The notes under the pieces: generated by a model | Told to the model about the DNA's origin: nothing | The model's input: only the letters and a program-made list of their open reading frames with translations | Databases searched by the model: none | Shown here: positions 10,035 through 64,000 of the stretch, in pieces | How positions within the stretch are numbered: the stretch's first letter is position 1 | Layout of the letters: every line of letters starts with the position of its first letter | Program-made: the position numbers and the translations under genes | DNA from: Lama glama | Taxonomy: Eukaryota | Direction of reading: 5' to 3' | Assembly (NCBI GenBank): GCA_028534125.1 | Contig: CM052822.1 | Location: 73,532,001 to 73,596,000 of the forward strand | Length of the DNA stretch: 64,000 nucleotides

Positions 10035-35714
<25,680 letters not shown>

Positions 35715-53559: not shown

Positions 53560-54480
53560 CCATGGGCGCATCATCGGGAATGTGCCCCATAAGACGCTTT
53601 ATGGGCTTCCTGAAATGCTGGGTGAGCCTTCAAGGCAGGAAGAGACTCCGACACATGGATCACTGCCGTCACCGTGGTCCCTTCCGTCTGCTCGTGCGAA
53701 ACGAGACCCAGGTTGCACTCGGGCAGTCAGACTCTGGTGGCGCAGAGAGGCCGGGACGGAAGGGGCCTTGGGGATCGGCTGGTGGAGAAGTATGACTGGA
53801 CTACGTCGGCCCAGAGAGCGTGCAAGTGTTCCTTCTAAGGCCTATTAAACTAGCACTACTGAGCTAATACCAAGGGACCTCGGTCAAGGAGGGAGCCGCG
53901 GCCAAGATCCGGCGGAGGAGGCGGCGTGACCCCCACCCACTTCCGGCCTCGGCCTCTTGCGCCTGCGCACTTGGTGCTGGCCGCCGGCTCGGGGAACGTA
54001 CCAACCGCGGGACGGGGGTGGGCGCGGCGCCGCGGGCTGTTGCTCCCGGAGGTGTAGCCCTTTGCGACCCGGGACCCCCCCCCCGGCTCTGCGGGGGCCT
54101 TTGGCGCCTTCGGGTACGACTCGCGGCGGCGCGGAGGTGGGTGCGGGCGGCGGCCCCTTGCTACCCGCCGCGGGGGCGCGGTCGGCCACAGCAGGAGCCG
54201 CGTCCAGCTCCACCAGCCCAGCCAGCCCGACCCCTGGCCGTAGGTGAGCCGGGGAGGGGGCGTTGTGGTCCCGCTTCACAGCTGTGGACTCGGGGGGTGC
54301 GGAGATGGCTTGCTCTGGTCTGCCCCGCTCATTGGCGGCTCAGGTGACCCCCTCCTAGCCTAGCCTCTCCTTCTCAGTGCCCTGCACCGGAAACACGAGG
54401 TGAGGCCAGAATGTACCGGACGGCGGCTCGTAACGTATCCATTGCGCACTCTGCGCCAGTAACTGTCCTTAAACACTGTT
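53560..54480 (+). promoter_or_regulatory. CpG-island promoter and non-coding exon 1 (donor at 54243/54244), probably shared by LRRC61 and ZBED10
   Basis: Very CpG-rich, with ETS CACTTCCGG (53938-53946), NRF1-like TGCGCCTGCGCA (53958-53969) and donor TAG|GTGAGC. The LRRC61 identity is inferred from synteny only; its coding exon is not in the window. Confidence 0.8.
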
Positions 54481-54727
54481 GTATGCAGACATGGACTCCC
54501 TTAATCCGTAACAAGCCAGTGAGCTGGCTGCTGTTAACCCTGTTGTATAGACCAGGAAACCGAGGCACACTAGTGCACGTAGTGCTCAGTCACAGCTGGT
54601 GATCCATCTTGTTGTTGTTCTCAAGTGTGTGCGTGTGTCATCCGTTATGAGAAGTGTAACAAACAACTTCTGATAACCAAAGTCCTGGAATTTGTGGGTG
54701 ACTTTCTTTTTACATTTCCTATTTTAG

Positions 54728-54900
54728 ATTCACGTAGATTCAAGGTTGGCGCTGCACAGTGTCCACCTCGCTGTCATCCTGACATGGTTCAGTGGAAAAG
54801 AGAGGGGTAGCATTACCGTGGGTCCCAGGGATTGCACACGATCCTGGACCTATCCCCAGGGGGCTGTCAGGAGATAAGGATCCGGAAGCAGTAGCCTAAG
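54728..54900 (+). other. Probable non-coding 5' UTR exon 2 (LRRC61/ZBED10 transcript)
   Basis: Polypyrimidine tract plus ttttAG acceptor and a strong AAG|GTAAGC donor. It contains only a short uORF (54784-54810). Confidence 0.6.
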
Positions 54901-57327
54901 GTAAGCCACCCTTCCAAGACAGAATCGAAACTCCCATGTCATAGGCCTGGTTTGCCTCTAGGTCAGCCTGAGGCCTGGCTCCAGGGTGCCTTGCCCTGGC
55001 GCTGGGAGGCATTTCCAAGTCATCCTCTCCTCCTGAGCCCGCATGCAGCCAGGCAGTTACTCATCTTTAGATTTGTGTTTCTAGGGTACAGGGCTGACTC
55101 ACGGTAGACATTTGACAAATTTTTGTTAAATGGTCAAGTGGATCAAGAGTCTCTGCAGAATATGGACAGACTGGAGGGACAAGGCAAGTTGGCGGACGGA
55201 ACAGGATTGGTGCCCTGGGGTAAACTAGCAGGTCCTCAGGTAAAGGCTTTGGGGTGTGACCTAGGCAGCAGCCTGACTTGAAGTGTTTTCCTTTTCTTTG
55301 CTCTTATCAGTGAGAGCAGGCCGGCCACGGGCCCACCTAGTTCTGTGTTCTTGGGAGCAATGAAGCCTACCGACTGCTTCTGGAGGCCCGGCGCCGGCTC
55401 TGGACCTCCACTCTGCCACTGACCATCACATTGCCGCTCTGGGTTTACGTTTCCTCAATCAAAACAAGAGTGGAGGTGAGCCCCTGTGGTTCTGATGCCT
55501 GGAGCACCTCCTGTGGGGCAGGACAGGGTCTTGCTCTTCATTTGCACCTTGACCCACAGCATCATCCACAGCACCTCCACAGTGTCACTGCCCGCAGGCC
55601 GCAGACATCGGGTTCGGTGGCAGCTGCCTGGGTGATTTCTCTTAGTTCTTCTGAGGCCCCTCTTGCTGGAAGGGGCTCCTCTGCATCATATTGTCCATGC
55701 TTCTCCATGGCCAGTTCTCACTTGAGCCACCGGTCAACAGTGAAGGCCATCCTGCCAGCCCTGGTGATCCTTCTGAATGGTTATCATTGCCTAGTGTCAG
55801 AATGTTCTGGCTCCCATCTCCTCACTTACCCTGCCCTCTGCTCTGGTCTGGAGAGACGCACACTCCCTGCTCTCAGATGTTCAGGGTGGGATCTGAGCCA
55901 CCTTCCTCTGAACCTTCTCTTTCCCTGGGACCCGTGTCCTGGCTCCCCGGCCTCCTCCTTCCTCACATTCTCTTCTTCTTTCCACACATTTCTCTTTTGT
56001 TTTCTTCATGTCTTCTTTTCTTTTGAGAGTCCTGAATTTGACCTCATCCCCGGAAGATGAATGCGGGAAAGGGAATTAAGGATTGTCCATAGGTTTAGGG
56101 TCTGAGCATCTGGGTGAACAGGTGTCCCATTTACCGAGATGGAGTTGACTGTGGGAAGAGCAGGTGAGAGGAGCCTGGGAGGGAGTTGGGAGCCAAAAGG
56201 GGCTCACAGGGGTCTGTGTGGAAATGCAGATGCAGCTCCAGTTGGGGAGGAGGTGTGGAAGTAGAACCAGGGCCTGGAAACAAGGAACCCTGGGAATCGC
56301 CATTGAGGGATGGGCAGAGACTGAAAAGGAGTCACAGGTGACAGGAAAGCCAAGAGAACGTGGTGTCCCAGGGCCTCGGGCCGCAGCATTCTAGATGGAG
56401 GGCTCGAGCAATTGCTCCAGTGCAGAGAAGTCCCCTGAGGTGGGGCCACGAGGGTCACCAGGGGGCCTCAGCTGTGTCAGTGTCAGGGACCTGCTGGGGC
56501 CGGAGCTGGAGAGGAGTGGGCTTTTGAGGAATGGGAGGTGAGAAGGTAGAAACAGCCCTTCAGGAGTTTGTCTGTGATAGGACGCTGGGGGCCTGGGTCA
56601 GTGGCATCGGGAGTGGCCCCACACTATGTGCTCCGGCAGAGGCTTAGGAAGCCTCGGGCTGCATAATCCGTGAAAACTGATCGCTGTTATCTTTTCATGG
56701 TGCCCTGGAGGTGCCAAGTACCACCTAGGGGCACAGGATGCAGAGACCGGCCACCTCCACTCGCTGCCGGCCTGCAGCTCTTCCAGGGAGACCTAGCTGT
56801 TTTCCTCATGAGTGTCTTCCTCATGGGGTCTCACAGCCCCCGCAGTGCTCCTCCACACCCTACACCTTGGCTTAAATTGTGTTGTGCATGTCTCTTATTC
56901 ACATTTGTCTTGCCCACCAGCCTGAGAGCCATGTGCATGCAGGTGCCTTGCCAACTTTATATTGTATCCATCACACAGGAACATTGCCAAATGCCTACTA
57001 GGTTCTGAGTGAACATTGAAAGAAAAGAGAGAAACCTCACTTAGTTTGGCAAAGAAGATGGACCCAGAAACCACTAACGTGCAGAGGGCTGTGGGGGTTC
57101 TGGTCCAGGGCGGCTCCGTCGGGTCTGAAGGAGTGAACATCAGGCTTCATTCACCAAGGAGGTCGGGATCTGGAGAGTTTTGTCCTGGGGCTGATTCCAT
57201 GTGGTAACTGCACCTCCATCCTCAGCTCTCTTCTCCCCTCTCCGGCCTCCCCTCCCCTCGTTGAGCTGTTCTTCTCATCTTGCCTTACAGCCTGGGCCTG
57301 TCTTCTCATTGCCCAAAGCTCCCAAGC

Positions 57328-60300
57328 ATGTTGGAAGTAGAAACGGTCAGAAAGCCCCCCAAGAAACATACCCCCTCGAGGTCAGTGGGGCAAGAGCCCC
57401 CTCTGTGTGCTGACTCTGCCGAGACCAGATCCAAGAGCCCAGCCACCACTCTGGCTTCTTCCAGCTCCAAGTTCAACACCAGAGCCACCAACACCTCTTG
57501 TGGACTTGGCTGGGATGCTGGGGGGCACCTGCCAGAGAACGAAGTCAAGCTTGAGTTTGCAGACATAGAGGAGAAGGCCGGTGGCTCCAGGAAGATCAGA
57601 GCCTCCAACTCCCAGAAGAAGAGTGAGAGGGAGCTGCCCCTGCAGAGGAAGAGACCTCGACCCCTCCCCAGAGCCTTGTCTGTCCCTTCGCCTGACCAGG
57701 CTTTCCTGGAGGAGCAGGAGGAAGGTCCCCTGGGCCCGCATGTCTGCAGCAAGAAGAGAAGGGCCTACTCCCTGGAGAGGCCTGGTCTTCACCCAGCTGT
57801 CTCTGGGGCAAATTGCCACGCCAGCCCTGGGCAGGATAAGAATAAGCCAAAGGGAGACCCTGGACCCTGTGGTCTCAAATCTGTGCTGGGGCAGGAGCCC
57901 CCGGTGCAGCCTAGGAAGAAGGTGTCCAAGCAGAAGGCATGTGGACGGAGAAAGGAGGGGGAGCCGGCAGCAAGGACATTGAGGGACCCAGTGCTCAGCT
58001 CTGGACAGGCCCCTTCCAGCCTGGTATTGGTTCAGACCAGCAGCCTGGACAGGCGAGAGGTGGGCCAGCCTGGTGAGAATGAGGTGAGGCAGACCGATGT
58101 CCTCATAGCCCGCCTGGCCAGAGAGGTGCGTCACCTCAAGAAGTGGAAGAAGAGGCATTTGCTCCCTGGCGTTGGGGAGCAGCCGCCCCTGCTGAGCCTC
58201 CAGAGGCCACTCTGCCCCAAGAAGCTGGTCAGCACCGCAGGGGTGGAGGCCAAGGGCTGGGCCCCCGGGCCGCCCCCGGGCCCCCTGGACACCACGGGCC
58301 AGAAGCCCACGCCCGACCTGAGACGATTCTTCACCACCGTCAACTACAGGAACATCTGCCGAGTCACCTGCACTCTGTGCCACGCGAGCATCAAACAGGG
58401 CAAGGTGAAGGGGCAGTCCCAGCCCTCAGGTCTGGTCCGCCACTTGGCAAGAAAGCATGGGCTGGACGTGGGGAGAAAGCCAACTGCGGCCGGCCCTGGG
58501 AGGGAGCAGGGAGGGGCTGAGAAGAAACAGAAGGGCCTCCCCGCAGGTGCCGCCGGCCAGGTCTCCCAGGGGCTCCCATCACCACGACGCTGCCCGGACG
58601 CCTCACCTCCAGAAGACGGGGAGGGGCAGGCGGCCCCAGGCAGGCCTGAGCAGTTGGTACAGGCTCTGCCCCCGCTGCCTACTCCCACCAGAGATAAACC
58701 TACTGTTGCCCCTGTGGAGGGTGGGGAGGACCAGGGTGGCCTGTATGCCCCCAACCAGCCCCGAGCACAGGCCTGGAACCACAGCATTGCCGAGTTACTC
58801 TGCAGCCTGGCCTTGCCACTTTCTTTTGTTTCATCCCCACCCTTCAGAAGATTTATGGCCCAGGTGGATCCCTGCTACCACCTGCCACCTCCAGCCTTCT
58901 TCTCTGGGAAAGCCTTGCCTCTGCTCCATGAAGCAATGGGGGAGCAGGTGCGTCAGGAAATGCGGTGGGCTAAGGGTGGCTGCGTTCACCTCAGTGTGTC
59001 CGTGGCAGCCCAGGACACAGTTGTGGACTATGTGGCTATCACTGCCCACTGGGGGGTGACACGGCCGGGTAGCCAACAGGTGGGGTCTGGAAGCCCAAGG
59101 AAGCAGGCTGTGCTCTGGGTCCGGGGCCTTCCCCTGGAGAGTGTCCTAGAGGACAGGCAGCAGGAGCTGCGGGAGCAGCTCAGCTTGTGGCTCAGCCACG
59201 GCTCCCTGAGGCCGGGCTTTCTGGTGGCGGGTGGCTGCCCCAGCCTGGAGCAGGTGGTGAGGACAGAGGGCTACATCCCTGTCCCTTGCTTTGTCCACTG
59301 CCTCGACTCTCTGGTGGGAAGCTTTCTGTGTCACCATCACAGCGTCCAGATCATCCTGGGCACGGCCAGGGCCATCTGCAGCCACTTCCAAGGCTCCGCA
59401 GAGGCCCGGCGGCTCCTCTCCCGGCTGCAGCGGCGGTGCGGTCTCCCAGCGCACCAGCCCTTTTGGGAGCTCTCAGACCACTGGGTCTCTGCCTACCGCC
59501 TGATGGAGTGGCTGGTGGAGCAGCAGCGGCCACTGCAGGAGTATGAGGAGAAACACCAGCTGGGGAAGGCGGGGACAGCCCTGTCGGCCATGTTTTGGAG
59601 CCTGACAGACAGCCTGGTCCAGCTCCTGCGGCCCTTCCAGATGGTGGTCCGGGAGGCGAGCACCACACAGGCTTCCTTGAGCCTGGTGCTGCCCCAGCTA
59701 CGCTACCTGCACATCTTCCTGGAGCAGGTTCGCGGGTACTTTGAGGAGCAGAGCGCTGGGGAGATGGGTGCAGCTGTGCGGCTGGCTGAGGGCTTGGCCC
59801 TGCAGCTGACCACAGATGGCCAGCTCACCGAGCTCTTCCACCGCGAGGAGTTTGTGCTGGCGACCCTCTTGGATCCCCGCTTCAAGGGGAGGATCGAGGC
59901 CATCCTGCCCGCGGGGGCTGACATTGACCACTGGAAGCAGGTGCTCGTGTACAAGGTAAAGGAGATCATGGTGTCGGAATACTCCTTGCCTCCCTCGCCG
60001 TCCCTGCAGAGCCCCCGGGCTGTGCGTGCGGACTCCGCCTTGAGTGGCAGAGTGGCCAGGAGCTCCGGGGCAGAGGGAAAGGACCAAGAGGACCCTGTGC
60101 AGAGAGGCAGTGCCTCTGAGTCTTTGCTGTTTGGCCAGAGGGAGAAGAGCCTGCTGGAGCAGCTGGAAAGCGTGGGGCTGCTGGCCTCCAGGAGGAGTGG
60201 TGCCTCGCTCTCCATGGAGAACCACCAGGCCAGCGTCATTGTGAAGAAGTACCTGCGCGAGAATGAGGCGGTGGGTGCCCAGGAGGACCCCCTGGCTTAC

Positions 60301-60582
60301 TGGGAGAAGAGGTGGGATGTCTGGCCAGCCCTGGCGAGACTGGCCACCATCTATCTGTCCTGCCCCCCGACGGGCACCTTCTCGGCAAGTGTCTTGGCCT
60401 CCCTGGGCAGCCGGACCATCACGGAACATGACCCCTCTCTCCCAGTGGACGCCATCCAGTATCTTCTCTTCCTGAAGACCAACCTGGAGAATTTCCCCAG
60501 CTACACCCCGCCGCCCCTTATCTTCCCCAGTGGGGACCTGGCTGATGTGGAACAGACCAGTGAGCCTGACTGCACGGTCTGA
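57328..60582 (+). CDS. ZBED10: BED zinc finger / hAT transposase-derived protein, 1084 aa, single coding exon (likely full-length ortholog of human ZBED6CL/ZBED10P)
   Basis: Uninterrupted ORF whose first ATG is at 57328 (A at -3), after acceptor ccttacAG at 57290. BED finger RRFFTT..VTCTLC..SGLVRHLARKH. hAT motifs PLSFVSSPPFRRFM..DP.Y.LP, YVAITAHW, PCFVHCL, ATLLDPRFK, and the dimerization-domain DPLAYW..WPALARLA.IYLSCPP..LLFLKTN. The symbol is assigned by synteny. Confidence 0.88.
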   Translation: MLEVETVRKPPKKHTPSRSVGQEPPLCADSAETRSKSPATTLASSSSKFNTRATNTSCGLGWDAGGHLPENEVKLEFADIEEKAGGSRKIRASNSQKKSERELPLQRKRPRPLPRALSVPSPDQAFLEEQEEGPLGPHVCSKKRRAYSLERPGLHPAVSGANCHASPGQDKNKPKGDPGPCGLKSVLGQEPPVQPRKKVSKQKACGRRKEGEPAARTLRDPVLSSGQAPSSLVLVQTSSLDRREVGQPGENEVRQTDVLIARLAREVRHLKKWKKRHLLPGVGEQPPLLSLQRPLCPKKLVSTAGVEAKGWAPGPPPGPLDTTGQKPTPDLRRFFTTVNYRNICRVTCTLCHASIKQGKVKGQSQPSGLVRHLARKHGLDVGRKPTAAGPGREQGGAEKKQKGLPAGAAGQVSQGLPSPRRCPDASPPEDGEGQAAPGRPEQLVQALPPLPTPTRDKPTVAPVEGGEDQGGLYAPNQPRAQAWNHSIAELLCSLALPLSFVSSPPFRRFMAQVDPCYHLPPPAFFSGKALPLLHEAMGEQVRQEMRWAKGGCVHLSVSVAAQDTVVDYVAITAHWGVTRPGSQQVGSGSPRKQAVLWVRGLPLESVLEDRQQELREQLSLWLSHGSLRPGFLVAGGCPSLEQVVRTEGYIPVPCFVHCLDSLVGSFLCHHHSVQIILGTARAICSHFQGSAEARRLLSRLQRRCGLPAHQPFWELSDHWVSAYRLMEWLVEQQRPLQEYEEKHQLGKAGTALSAMFWSLTDSLVQLLRPFQMVVREASTTQASLSLVLPQLRYLHIFLEQVRGYFEEQSAGEMGAAVRLAEGLALQLTTDGQLTELFHREEFVLATLLDPRFKGRIEAILPAGADIDHWKQVLVYKVKEIMVSEYSLPPSPSLQSPRAVRADSALSGRVARSSGAEGKDQEDPVQRGSASESLLFGQREKSLLEQLESVGLLASRRSGASLSMENHQASVIVKKYLRENEAVGAQEDPLAYWEKRWDVWPALARLATIYLSCPPTGTFSASVLASLGSRTITEHDPSLPVDAIQYLLFLKTNLENFPSYTPPPLIFPSGDLADVEQTSEPDCTV

Positions 60583-61764
60583 TGCCCCGAAAAGCTGCCT
60601 GTGGAAAGAAGCAGAGTATTGCACCTGAGGACATTAGACAAGGGCAGCCAGAATCTTAAACCTGTTTGAAAAGAATGAGGGCAGTTTCTCACCTCTTGCC
60701 AGACGGCCGCTTTCACTTACAGGGAGGTGTCCTTTTCCATCTGGCCGCCGCTTGATTTATGGCCAGCGGTGTGTGTGTGGAAAGGTTTACTCCGCTCACG
60801 GGTGACTCCCAGTTGTACTACACAGCTTGTTAACTGTGGTGCTCTTTTAAAATACCAGCGGGTAGTAAGGGCCCCCCATACAGCTTGTCCGTGTGTGTCG
60901 GGGGTGCGGGCCCTGAGAGCAGCCAGAGCCCAGGGAGCCGTGTGTGCTGCGGGGGAGGTATGCCCAGCCACCCAGGCCAGGGGGACACTGTGGGCGCTCT
61001 TCCTGAGACAGAGGTGCTGTTTTAAGAGGAAGGGGCCCACGGGCACACGGGGCTTCTCAGGGCCTGTACTCTCCCTGGATCCCAGAGTGCCCCAGAGCTC
61101 TGGTGGCTGGGACTGCTGGCTCCTGAGGTCATGTGACTGAGGAGAGCTGAGACCCCCCCCCCCCAGTCCTCACACTGTCATTCTTACCTGTAGTTTGCAG
61201 ACCCCCAGAAACCTTGGGGTTTCTTCCTTTCTACAGTGGACACCTCAGGAAGCAAGGAAAGATGTATATCCTAGGAATGGAACAGCCTGGCCTGAGTTCT
61301 TTTGGGGCCAGGGCAGGACCTGAGGGCGTGGGACCAGGCACTGGGGGGATCCGGTGGAGAAGAAGGAAAAGGAGAGGTAGGGGTGTGGGGGGTGGCCCAT
61401 CTCACCCCACAAGACGCGAGTCTAGCTCTCCCAAGGTGCTGGGTCACCAGGGGACGTGGCGGTGAGACGGAAGGTGGGGAGACGCAGGGCGAGGCACCGA
61501 GGCCTAATCTGCACTGTGGCCCTGGCTGTGGGGGTGAGCCTGGGAGACCTGTCCCCTTGCGTCCCCGTGTCACTGTGACTAATTCACTGCAGGGCATTCG
61601 GAAGTTACTGAGAACATGAGAAGCTGGAGAAATTCCCTGTCATCCTTTCATTCAGACGGCCTCTGTTACTGCTTAAACATGTTTCCTTTTTTTACTTTGA
61701 GATCATACCCTGTCCTACTTAGCGTGGTGTATTTTCATTTTGACGGTGTCATTGTGGCATCTTG

Positions 61765-61770
61765 AATAAA
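61765..61770 (+). terminator. Polyadenylation signal for the ZBED-like terminal exon
   Basis: AATAAA about 1.2 kb after the stop codon, with GT-rich sequence downstream (cagtggttggagcagtgtgattgg). Confidence 0.7.
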
Positions 61771-62605: not shown

Positions 62606-64000
62606 TGCCAGATCGTGGACGGAAGGCGATGGGGTGCAGGAGGGTCCCCAGTCCGCCAAAGCTGCCAGGTGACTGTCCACCTGAGGCTGCTCTGAGTTGA
62701 ACTTTTTCTCTCCTAGACTTAGCTCTGCCCCACTCTTCCTGACTCACGGGCATCCTTTCCTGGCCCATTTCCTACAGAGGTAACCTGAGATTCAGAAAAG
62801 CTGGCTCTGAACAAGGGAAGATGGGCCTCCCTCCAGAGAGCCGAATGTCACCTGTGTCTTGGTCATAGTCTCATCCACATAACCAAGTCCTTTTCACAGA
62901 CCCGCACTGGGCCAACAGCCTCTGCTTATTTCCATAACAGGACCAGGATGCCCCTTGCTTTTCAGAGAGGAGGGCTGACAGGCTTAGGTGTGGCTGAGCC
63001 ATTCTCCCATCGTGAAGAGCCTCCTCTCAGTTGCTGGTCTCTCCATTTGGGTACACCTGGATTTGCACAGGTGTGTGGGCCCTTGCCTTGTTGAGGTGTG
63101 CAGATCTGAGGTAAGACAGTGACCAGGAGCAGAACAGAGATGGTTGATGCACTGGCAAATCGTGTTTTGACTGTGGTGCTGTTCATCTAACTGCAGACAA
63201 GGGTGCAGGACCGAAGGCACAGAGCCGTGGGCTGGAGGGTCACGTATTTCCCACCGGATAGGACCTTGGGGCACAGAAGGCTTGATTTGCAGTCCCAGTG
63301 GGATCTTTCTGCTCCTCTGGTTCCTCTTCTGCAGAAAGCATTCCTCTACCCTCCGGCTTTACCGTGGGCAGCGAGTGCACCATTCCGTCCCTGCTCCCTC
63401 GTTCTTTCCTTCCCTTCGGGCCACCACCTCCATCTCCATCACTAACCTGCTCCTCAGGGCATCTCTGCCTGACCCTCGTGGTCCACTGTGACCTCCCCTC
63501 TGCCCCAGACTACCCCACCTGATGGCCTCTTCTCGTTTGGACCCAGTGTGCACCAGGGGTTCCCGACCACTTTCACCCCCAAAATAGTATGGCTGGGAGG
63601 ATAGCCATCCTCCTAGAGTAAGGCCCACAGGTACTGAAAGAAGCCTGTGTCCCCTAAGGCTGGCCTGGTGTGCTGTGTGCTCACATGGTGGGTGGATCTG
63701 CACCTGCCTCCTAAGGCCGATGCCACAGGCACCCTAGAGCCTTGTCCCAGCTAAGTCTTCTTGCCCCCACCCTGCCTGTCCCAGCTGCGTGGGAGGTAGG
63801 AGCTGTGTGTCTGGTCACGTGGCCAGGTCCCGAGCACGTGTTCTCCCTCCTCTCCATCTCTCGTTGCCTTTGGCGGGGTCCTTGTCGCTTGCTAGGGCTT
63901 TTATGGCATGTTTTCAGGGTCTGGTGCCCCTCGTGCCCCACCCCACCCTACGGGCCAGAGCAGGTGTAACCAGATGCAGAGGGGACTGCGTCACTCCCTG

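Follow-up and report, generated by a model that had tools for sequence, protein, structure and literature searches.

Within a 64,000-nucleotide stretch of the llama (Lama glama) genome (assembly GCA_028534125.1, contig CM052822.1, positions 73,532,001 to 73,596,000 of the forward strand; referred to here as the window, with positions counted from its first letter) we analysed a long open reading frame (ORF) at 57328-60582 on the + strand. This ORF is almost certainly the camelid ortholog of ZBED6CL/ZBED10, a tetrapod-wide gene domesticated from a transposase of the hAT (Ac-type) family. The predicted protein keeps the fold of such a transposase, while its three catalytic positions are occupied by other residues. 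Taking all evidence together, we assign a probability of roughly 80% to the joint claim that the ORF is the ZBED6CL/ZBED10 ortholog and that it represents a constrained, functional gene which does not transpose.

The ORF runs from an ATG at 57328 to a stop codon at 60580-60582 and encodes 1084 amino acids (aa) in a single exon, which agrees with the 3.25 kilobases of stop-free sequence claimed in a preliminary description of this DNA. The nearest in-frame stop upstream is found at 57262-57264, and Met1 is the sole in-frame methionine within codons 1-450 of the ORF. At the given base composition, the computed chance of encountering 1084 stop-free codons is about 4e-17. The long basic N-terminal region mentioned in the same description is likewise present, with a net charge of +23 over residues 1-340 and an enrichment of P, K, S and R, and the two sequence motifs that it had located, CTLC at 58369-58380 and RHLARKH ending at 58458, are found at exactly these positions (RHLARKH covering 58438-58458). 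The parts of the gene are listed below, where paired values denote mean pairwise identity, computed separately among placental (first value) and non-placental (second value) orthologs.

57328..60582, + strand: whole coding sequence of the camelid ZBED6CL/ZBED10 ortholog, 1084 aa and stop (ORF, orthologs, 99.5% identity to the alpaca model)
57328..58317, + strand: basic low-complexity N-terminus, residues 1-330 (composition; identity 0.53 and 0.39)
57541..57555, + strand: E-V-K-L-E motif, residues 72-76 (conservation; E72 and K74 at least 90%)
57820-57972, + strand: degenerate relic of a first BED finger (BED-I), residues ~165-215 (alignment to the non-placental CCHH finger)
58318..58482, + strand: BED finger II (BED-II), residues 331-385 (ligands C348 and C351 at 58369-58380, H372 and H377 at 58441-58458; identity 0.58 and 0.83)
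58483..58752, + strand: G/P/A-rich linker, residues 386-475, weakly conserved (identity 0.43 and 0.28)
58753..59997, + strand: hAT core, residues 476-890 (model fold matches Hermes; profile alignment; identity 0.76 and 0.60)
59998..60132, + strand: disordered, weakly conserved insert, residues 891-935 (predicted local distance difference test, pLDDT, ~30; identity 0.41)
60133..60522, + strand: C-terminal hAT dimerisation region, residues 936-1065 (Pfam match at residues 974-1053, 60247-60486; alignment to the Hermes C-terminus; identity 0.76 and 0.70)

The window protein is 99.5% identical (5 residue differences in 1084) to an alpaca RefSeq protein of the same length (XP_072820321/P0117, 'LRRC61 isoform X2') and 96.7% identical to its Camelus counterparts P0001 and P0114, from which it differs at 35 and 36 residues, respectively, and by two one-residue indels. 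RefSeq models exist at 1084 aa and, as isoform X1, at 1131 aa for alpaca, and at 1084 aa for the dromedary (ZBED6CL). The ORF is hence not new but already known as an annotation: RefSeq contains it for alpaca and camels and in dozens of further species. A protein search returned 86 matches above the paralogs ZBED6 and ZBED4, more than 80 of which are at least 900 aa long. The closest of these stems from Camelus ferus (97% over 1084 aa), followed by rhinoceros, donkey, pig, cats, panda, bats, ferret and dog; other placental matches derive from sloth, armadillo, anteater, beaver, rabbit, pika, squirrels, mole-rats, guinea pig, mole and titi monkey. The placental matches comprise 1016-1139 aa and are 55-75% identical to the window protein (57-76% when compared with the full-length placental models of the ortholog group), while the proteins of platypus, turtles, caecilians, axolotl and many frogs show 38-47% identity over 70% of the query (34-42% overall). 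From placentals to amphibians, orthologs measure 1016-1159 aa. The next relatives are ZBED6 (28-29% identity) and ZBED4 (25-28%). The names under which the orthologs are filed vary: frog entries use ZBEDX, RefSeq models of mammals ZBED6CL or 'LRRC61 isoform X', and HGNC-derived entries ZBED10(P), with source names such as 'ZBED6 C-terminal-like protein', 'LRRC61 isoform X1' and 'ZBED6(-like)', and the dog entry reads 'Zinc finger BED-type containing 10, pseudo'.

For the core region, a maximum-likelihood tree obtained by a quick IQ-TREE search with ZBED4 as outgroup recovers amphibians, turtles, platypus, Xenarthra, Euarchontoglires and Laurasiatheria in the order of the species tree, with ZBED6 as sister group. 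The camelid end branch has a length of 0.13 compared to a median of 0.11, and the placental stem branch is long (0.48). The congruence with the species tree indicates orthologous descent from a domestication event in or before the tetrapod ancestor and not a recent insertion. Orthologs and gene tree together bear out the earlier assignment to the domesticated hAT transposase genes of the ZBED6CL/ZBED10 group. The accompanying claim that the gene was kept 'in this lineage' is, in turn, too narrow, as full-length orthologs are annotated for the majority of placental orders, New World monkeys among them, as well as for platypus, turtles and amphibians.

To what extent the protein still resembles a transposase can be read from an AlphaFold2 model of residues 470-1084 (pLDDT 78; predicted template-modelling score 0.77). 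In this model, the hAT core consists of an N-terminal helical bundle, an RNase-H-like beta sheet and an all-alpha insertion domain. The top and sole strong structural match is the transposase of the active hAT element Hermes of Musca domestica (PDB 2bw3, 4d1q, 6dww, 8edg), with E 2e-14, a probability of 1.00 and a template-modelling score of 0.56-0.72 over ~590 columns. Both proteins share the same overall fold, in which the RNase-H-like core is split by the all-alpha insertion domain and followed by a C-terminal region, and a CxxH motif as well as a C-terminal W/P/L/S pattern can be aligned. In a search against solved structures the single sequence gave no match; a sequence profile built from 32 orthologs matches the Hermes chains (E 2e-11) at the CxxH region and, as a second stretch, at the C-terminus, the latter aligning to the C-terminus of Hermes with E 3e-6. 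In addition, the Pfam domain Dimer_Tnp_hAT (PF05699) is detected at residues 974-1053 (E 1.1e-7, 32 bits compared to a cut-off of 21.4). The full hAT RNase-H-like core and the C-terminal dimerization domain that had been noted before are thus supported by predicted structure and by a domain match above its cut-off, respectively.

Compared to Hermes, to which it is only ~14% identical, the window protein differs in the active site. The catalytic residues of Hermes are reportedly D180, D248 and E572, as assigned by Hickman and co-workers in 2005. The position of the first Asp is taken by S558 (58999-59001), within a motif that reads S-x-A-A in placentals and H-V-W-T in non-placentals, and that of the second by G635/G636 (59230-59235), in an A-G-G-C loop that follows the strand formed by residues 628-634; both positions were located via motif and model secondary structure, not by residue-level structural superposition. 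No ortholog possesses an acidic residue in the loop of the second Asp, and the first two catalytic positions are devoid of Asp down to the frogs. The catalytic Glu, which is part of the 'SERTF' sequence in Hermes, corresponds to A1020 (60385-60387). This position is Ala in camelids and pig and E in non-mammals, Euarchontoglires and xenarthrans; many laurasiatherians and the sloth show G, A, R or K. The CxxH motif (C654, H657; 59287-59298) is retained and invariant or nearly so among orthologs. In place of the intact DDE triad of an active hAT transposon, the llama protein thus carries S558, G635/G636 and A1020. Moreover, between positions 55500 and 62500 we found no inverted repeat bracketing the ORF and no terminal inverted repeats with a target-site duplication, in line with the preliminary description; the best inverted-repeat arms (20-32 nucleotides, 70-90% match) are scattered and non-terminal.

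With the three catalytic carboxylates gone and terminal inverted repeats missing, the protein cannot transpose. One might nevertheless take the full-length transposase architecture and the long intact ORF as signs of a recently active, or even still mobile, autonomous hAT transposon copy. We attach next to no probability to this view, since the missing catalytic residues together with the vertical phylogeny already refute it: for more than 300 million years the orthologs have tracked the species tree, annotations of many species assign the same ORF to the LRRC61 locus, and no second copy of it occurs in the 64-kilobase window.

Platypus, turtles and amphibians possess two CCHH fingers, whereas BED-I is missing in 23 of the 23 placental sequences examined; the placental N-terminus can still be aligned to this finger and retains at most one of its zinc ligands. 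In BED-II, which shows the C-x2-C ... H-x3-5-H arrangement of the N-terminal BED zinc finger of hAT transposases, all four ligands (C348, C351, H372 and H377) are present in the llama protein, at least 90% conserved among 32 orthologs and retained in 21 of the 23 placental sequences. A comparison of this finger with the solved BED domain of ZBED2 (2djr) gives a weak profile match (E 0.13). The two placental proteins without the BED-II ligands, P0021 from Pteronotus and P0046 from Talpa, show a deletion in one case and a divergent stretch in the other, which could be true losses of the finger or errors of the gene models. Further upstream, an E-[VI]-K-L-E motif with acidic residues behind it is shared by 28 of the 32 aligned orthologs, ranging from frogs to placentals; ZBED6 and ZBED4 lack it. 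In the llama protein, residues 72-76 fit the psi-K-x-E consensus and may thus constitute a putative sumoylation site.

The survival of the ORF, its domain-wise conservation and a crude estimate of ω, the ratio of non-synonymous (dN) to synonymous (dS) substitution rates, all suggest that the gene has been under purifying selection. In simulations of neutral substitutions, none of 2000 copies of the ORF was free of stop codons at a nucleotide divergence of 10% or more, and ~19-27 stops are expected at 20-30% divergence; dozens of lineages across orders keep the ORF. Judged from the aligned orthologs, the dead transposase core and the C-terminus probably bear most of the constraint in placentals, and the window protein differs from Camelus at 2.2% of the amino acids in residues 481-1084 and at 5% in residues 1-480. 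The third line of evidence draws on RNA sequencing. Contigs from five RNA-labelled runs of three studies, which stem from a related organism or from samples labelled 'reproductive system metagenome', contain 0.48 of the sampled 31-mers of the ORF, and the same share of 0.48 is found in one extra run of uncertain type from a fourth study. If it reflects species divergence, this share translates to ~2.3% divergence or ~76 nucleotide differences. Combined with the protein comparison, approximately 37 non-synonymous differences at 2448 sites and 39 synonymous differences at 804 sites result, corresponding to a dN of ~0.015, a dS of ~0.049 and an ω of ~0.3, values which are derived from protein comparison and k-mer share and not from ortholog DNA, and which assume that the organism of the RNA runs is Camelus and that the contigs span the whole ORF; clustered differences would lower ω, and partial contig coverage would raise it.

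Some other lineages appear not to have kept the gene. Our survey of losses relied on protein databases, in which the absence of a protein does not prove its absence from the genome. When the search was started from the titi monkey protein, the matches included no protein of 596 aa or longer from a catarrhine or strepsirrhine, and the cluster of the titi protein includes full-length models from marmoset, squirrel monkey and owl monkey. A query with the last 235 residues retrieved only short models for bonobo (219 aa), drill (208 aa) and pig-tailed macaque (206 aa), as well as for mouse lemur (220 aa) and serow (268 aa), the latter two being named 'putative protein ZBED10P'. The catarrhine models (206-219 aa) span part of the alpha-helical insertion domain. 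Those of bonobo and drill begin at a Met that corresponds to titi M768, stop before the conserved C-terminal core, contain internal deletions and show a replacement of an otherwise invariant Arg (DPRFKG to DPCFKG), while the serow model is devoid of 24 residues including the invariant TLLD motif. The loss hence appears to be catarrhine-wide and to be paralleled in at least one ruminant. For human and chimpanzee, the C7ORF29 protein has been described as truncated at both ends (Hayward et al. 2013; PMC3606216), and this published truncation matches the bonobo and Old World monkey models, so that the truncated remnant postulated for the human lineage in the preliminary description finds support. 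The pseudogene symbol ZBED10P has already been given to the human remnant and is used in the dog, mouse-lemur and serow entry names. Among placentals, retention is the rule and loss the exception.

Several of our observations weigh against a constrained, functional gene. These include the assumptions that enter the crude ω and, in addition, the state of the remaining finger: while the preliminary description spoke of one complete BED finger, and the four zinc ligands are indeed there, the Pfam zf-BED match at residues 345-377 reaches 16.4 bits and thus stays below the cut-off of 20.6, and BED-II is more variable among placentals (58% identity) than among non-placentals (83%). Furthermore, the ortholog searches recovered no full-length protein from a marsupial, bird, squamate, murid or afrotherian, and given the short, decayed models in catarrhines, a lemur and a ruminant the gene seems to be dispensable. 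Finally, all five differences from the alpaca protein are amino-acid changes, while k-mer shares of 0.94-0.98 in DNA runs of South American camelids imply only ~3-6 nucleotide differences; this weakly hints at relaxed recent constraint, although numbers of this size do not allow an interpretation.

A rival proposal is that the camelid gene is already non-functional or drifting, with an ORF that is still open because too little time has passed, so that camelids would be at the beginning of the loss that catarrhines and ruminants have undergone. In its favour, one can cite the repeated loss or truncation in other lineages, the variable residue at the third catalytic position, the replacement nature of the five differences from alpaca and the precomputed Pfam core hit PF27039, which is missing in the camel protein and present in nearly all other orthologs. 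However, Lamini and Camelus alike have an intact ORF, and neutral change at the estimated 2.3% divergence would leave only 7% of the copies stop-free and alter 4.9% of the amino acids, whereas 3.3% of all residues and 2.2% of those in the core were observed to differ. The camelid branch is of ordinary length, and the invariant core residues are all present in the window protein, the latter by definition of the list. We therefore consider a drifting camelid gene highly improbable and retain the reading of a constrained, non-transposing ZBED6CL/ZBED10 ortholog.

How such a protein might act is less clear-cut, and we regard the following mechanism, which is drawn largely by analogy, as an even proposition. 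The protein would act in the nucleus as a regulator, binding DNA with its sole remaining BED finger and self-associating via the hAT core and the C-terminal region, like its sister ZBED6, a transcriptional repressor; its activity may be modulated through the conserved psi-K-x-E motif. Its mRNA would be transcribed from the CpG-island promoter of LRRC61 and spliced into the single large coding exon that begins at 57291. Alternatively, after the loss of BED-I and a relaxation of BED-II the placental protein could be functional mainly by means other than sequence-specific DNA binding, with the dead core and the C-terminus serving as a scaffold for interaction or oligomerisation that is possibly SUMO-related, as reported for ZBED1. 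The distribution of conservation fits this alternative: among placentals, core and C-terminus (0.76 each) are far better conserved than BED-II (0.58), whereas BED-II is the best conserved part among non-placentals (0.83). The complete disappearance of BED-I from the placental sequences examined, the long placental stem branch (0.48) and the conserved psi-K-x-E motif point in the same direction. Against it stands the retention of the BED-II zinc ligands in nearly all placentals, which is not expected of a finger that is out of use. A mainly scaffolding role appears rather unlikely to us, and a DNA-binding regulator is the mechanism we favour.

ZBED6 is among the closest known systems for comparison. 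This gene, a domesticated hAT gene inside ZC3H11A, encodes a repressor of IGF2. We take both ZBED6 and the window gene to be intronless ORFs that are nested in a host gene and use the promoter of the host. The two belong to sister clades and share BED fingers, a dead hAT core and a hAT C-terminal architecture. With an identity of only 28-29%, they differ in that ZBED6 possesses two strong BED domains (70 bits) in place of one sub-threshold finger (16 bits), lacks the E-[VI]-K-L-E motif, and is placental-specific and highly conserved, whereas the window gene is tetrapod-wide and was repeatedly lost. ZBED6 has likewise been placed as sister of the ZBED6CL/ZBEDX group, with ZBED4 as outgroup, in the literature (PMC3606216). 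The ORF in the window is the same gene as that of the ZBED6CL/C7ORF29/ZBEDX group, for which the same study describes the mammalian C7ORF29 as truncated and BED-less, and solely the Xenopus ZBEDX as full-length with two BED domains (PMC3606216). In contrast to this account, the camelid gene and most other placental genes are full-length and contain one BED finger. A zebrafish 'ZBEDX' (PMC9859435) was considered as a further relative and rejected, as it is a different gene of 630 aa that reuses the name. In our literature search, no paper naming ZBED10 was found and ZBED6CL appeared only in gene lists and expression screens; in the absence of a published functional study among the results, the characterisation of the gene as largely uncharacterised, made at the outset, holds.

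With regard to gene structure, the predicted alpaca isoform X1 of 1131 aa acquires its 47 N-terminal residues from an additional mini-exon. The predicted intron behind this mini-exon covers 57162-57290, with an AG acceptor at 57289-57290, and the first nucleotide of the main exon is 57291, 37 nucleotides ahead of the ATG. The features flanking the coding exon are:

57058..57161, + strand: optional upstream coding mini-exon (ATG at 57058, GT donor at 57162; exact match to the N-terminus of alpaca P0118; predicted model)
53601..54800, no strand assigned: CpG island (GC fraction 0.62-0.74, CpG observed/expected 0.77), ~2.5 kilobases upstream of the coding exon
61765..61770, + strand: putative first poly(A)-signal hexamer (AATAAA or ATTAAA) after the stop codon (motif scan)

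The CpG island is likely the shared promoter and first exon of an LRRC61/ZBED6CL unit. That the gene is transcribed in a related organism is suggested by the RNA-labelled runs described above, whose contigs contain 48% of the sampled words of the ORF. In alpaca, pig, ferret, armadillo and others the ORF is named 'LRRC61 isoform X1/X2'; an LRRC61 coding exon was not found within the window and presumably lies beyond position 64000. In older camelid RefSeq models (P0122, P0123, P0115, P0116) the ORF is divided between two proteins, an 'uncharacterized protein' of 395 aa and a 'ZBED6CL' of 575 aa. A splice donor at 58452, which would underlie the 395-aa models, was rejected because no GT is present at this site, and no part of the window encodes the alternative tail of 20 residues that these models carry. 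Two antisense ORFs that overlap the gene, of 333 aa (57382-58383, - strand) and 308 aa (59698-60624, - strand), are taken for the usual by-products of GC-rich coding sequence. Elsewhere in the window, ORFs at 18415-19182 (+ strand, 255 aa) and 31771-33912 (+ strand, 713 aa) both match the Pfam family zf-C17orf113 just under its cut-off, and the 713-aa ORF also carries a hAT dimerisation region. Both indicate a second hAT-derived gene in the window and, going by the human gene order, would probably be exons of ZNF862. The segment 24001-26000 is AT-rich (GC fraction 0.295) and contains N runs at 24674-24813 and 24953-25130.

In conclusion, the database models and the window differ from the one paper found to treat this gene, in that a full-length, one-BED, catalytically dead protein is found in most placental orders. 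Somewhat more probably than its opposite, the published picture of a truncated, BED-less mammalian remnant with a full gene in frogs only would be wrong for most mammals: full-length, catalytically dead ZBED10 would be a functional regulator in most placentals, in which one BED finger was lost and the other relaxed on the placental stem while constraint moved to the core. Its independent destruction would have followed later in the catarrhines, humans among them, in the ruminants and, probably, elsewhere. Relative to the preliminary description, this account adds that BED-I was lost and BED-II relaxed along the placental stem. If it is true, camelids, pig, horse and dog would offer natural systems in which to study a regulator missing from humans, and the repeated loss of the gene, along with a BED finger that relaxes while the dead core stays constrained, would make a tidy case of how domesticated transposases change their function or become dispensable.

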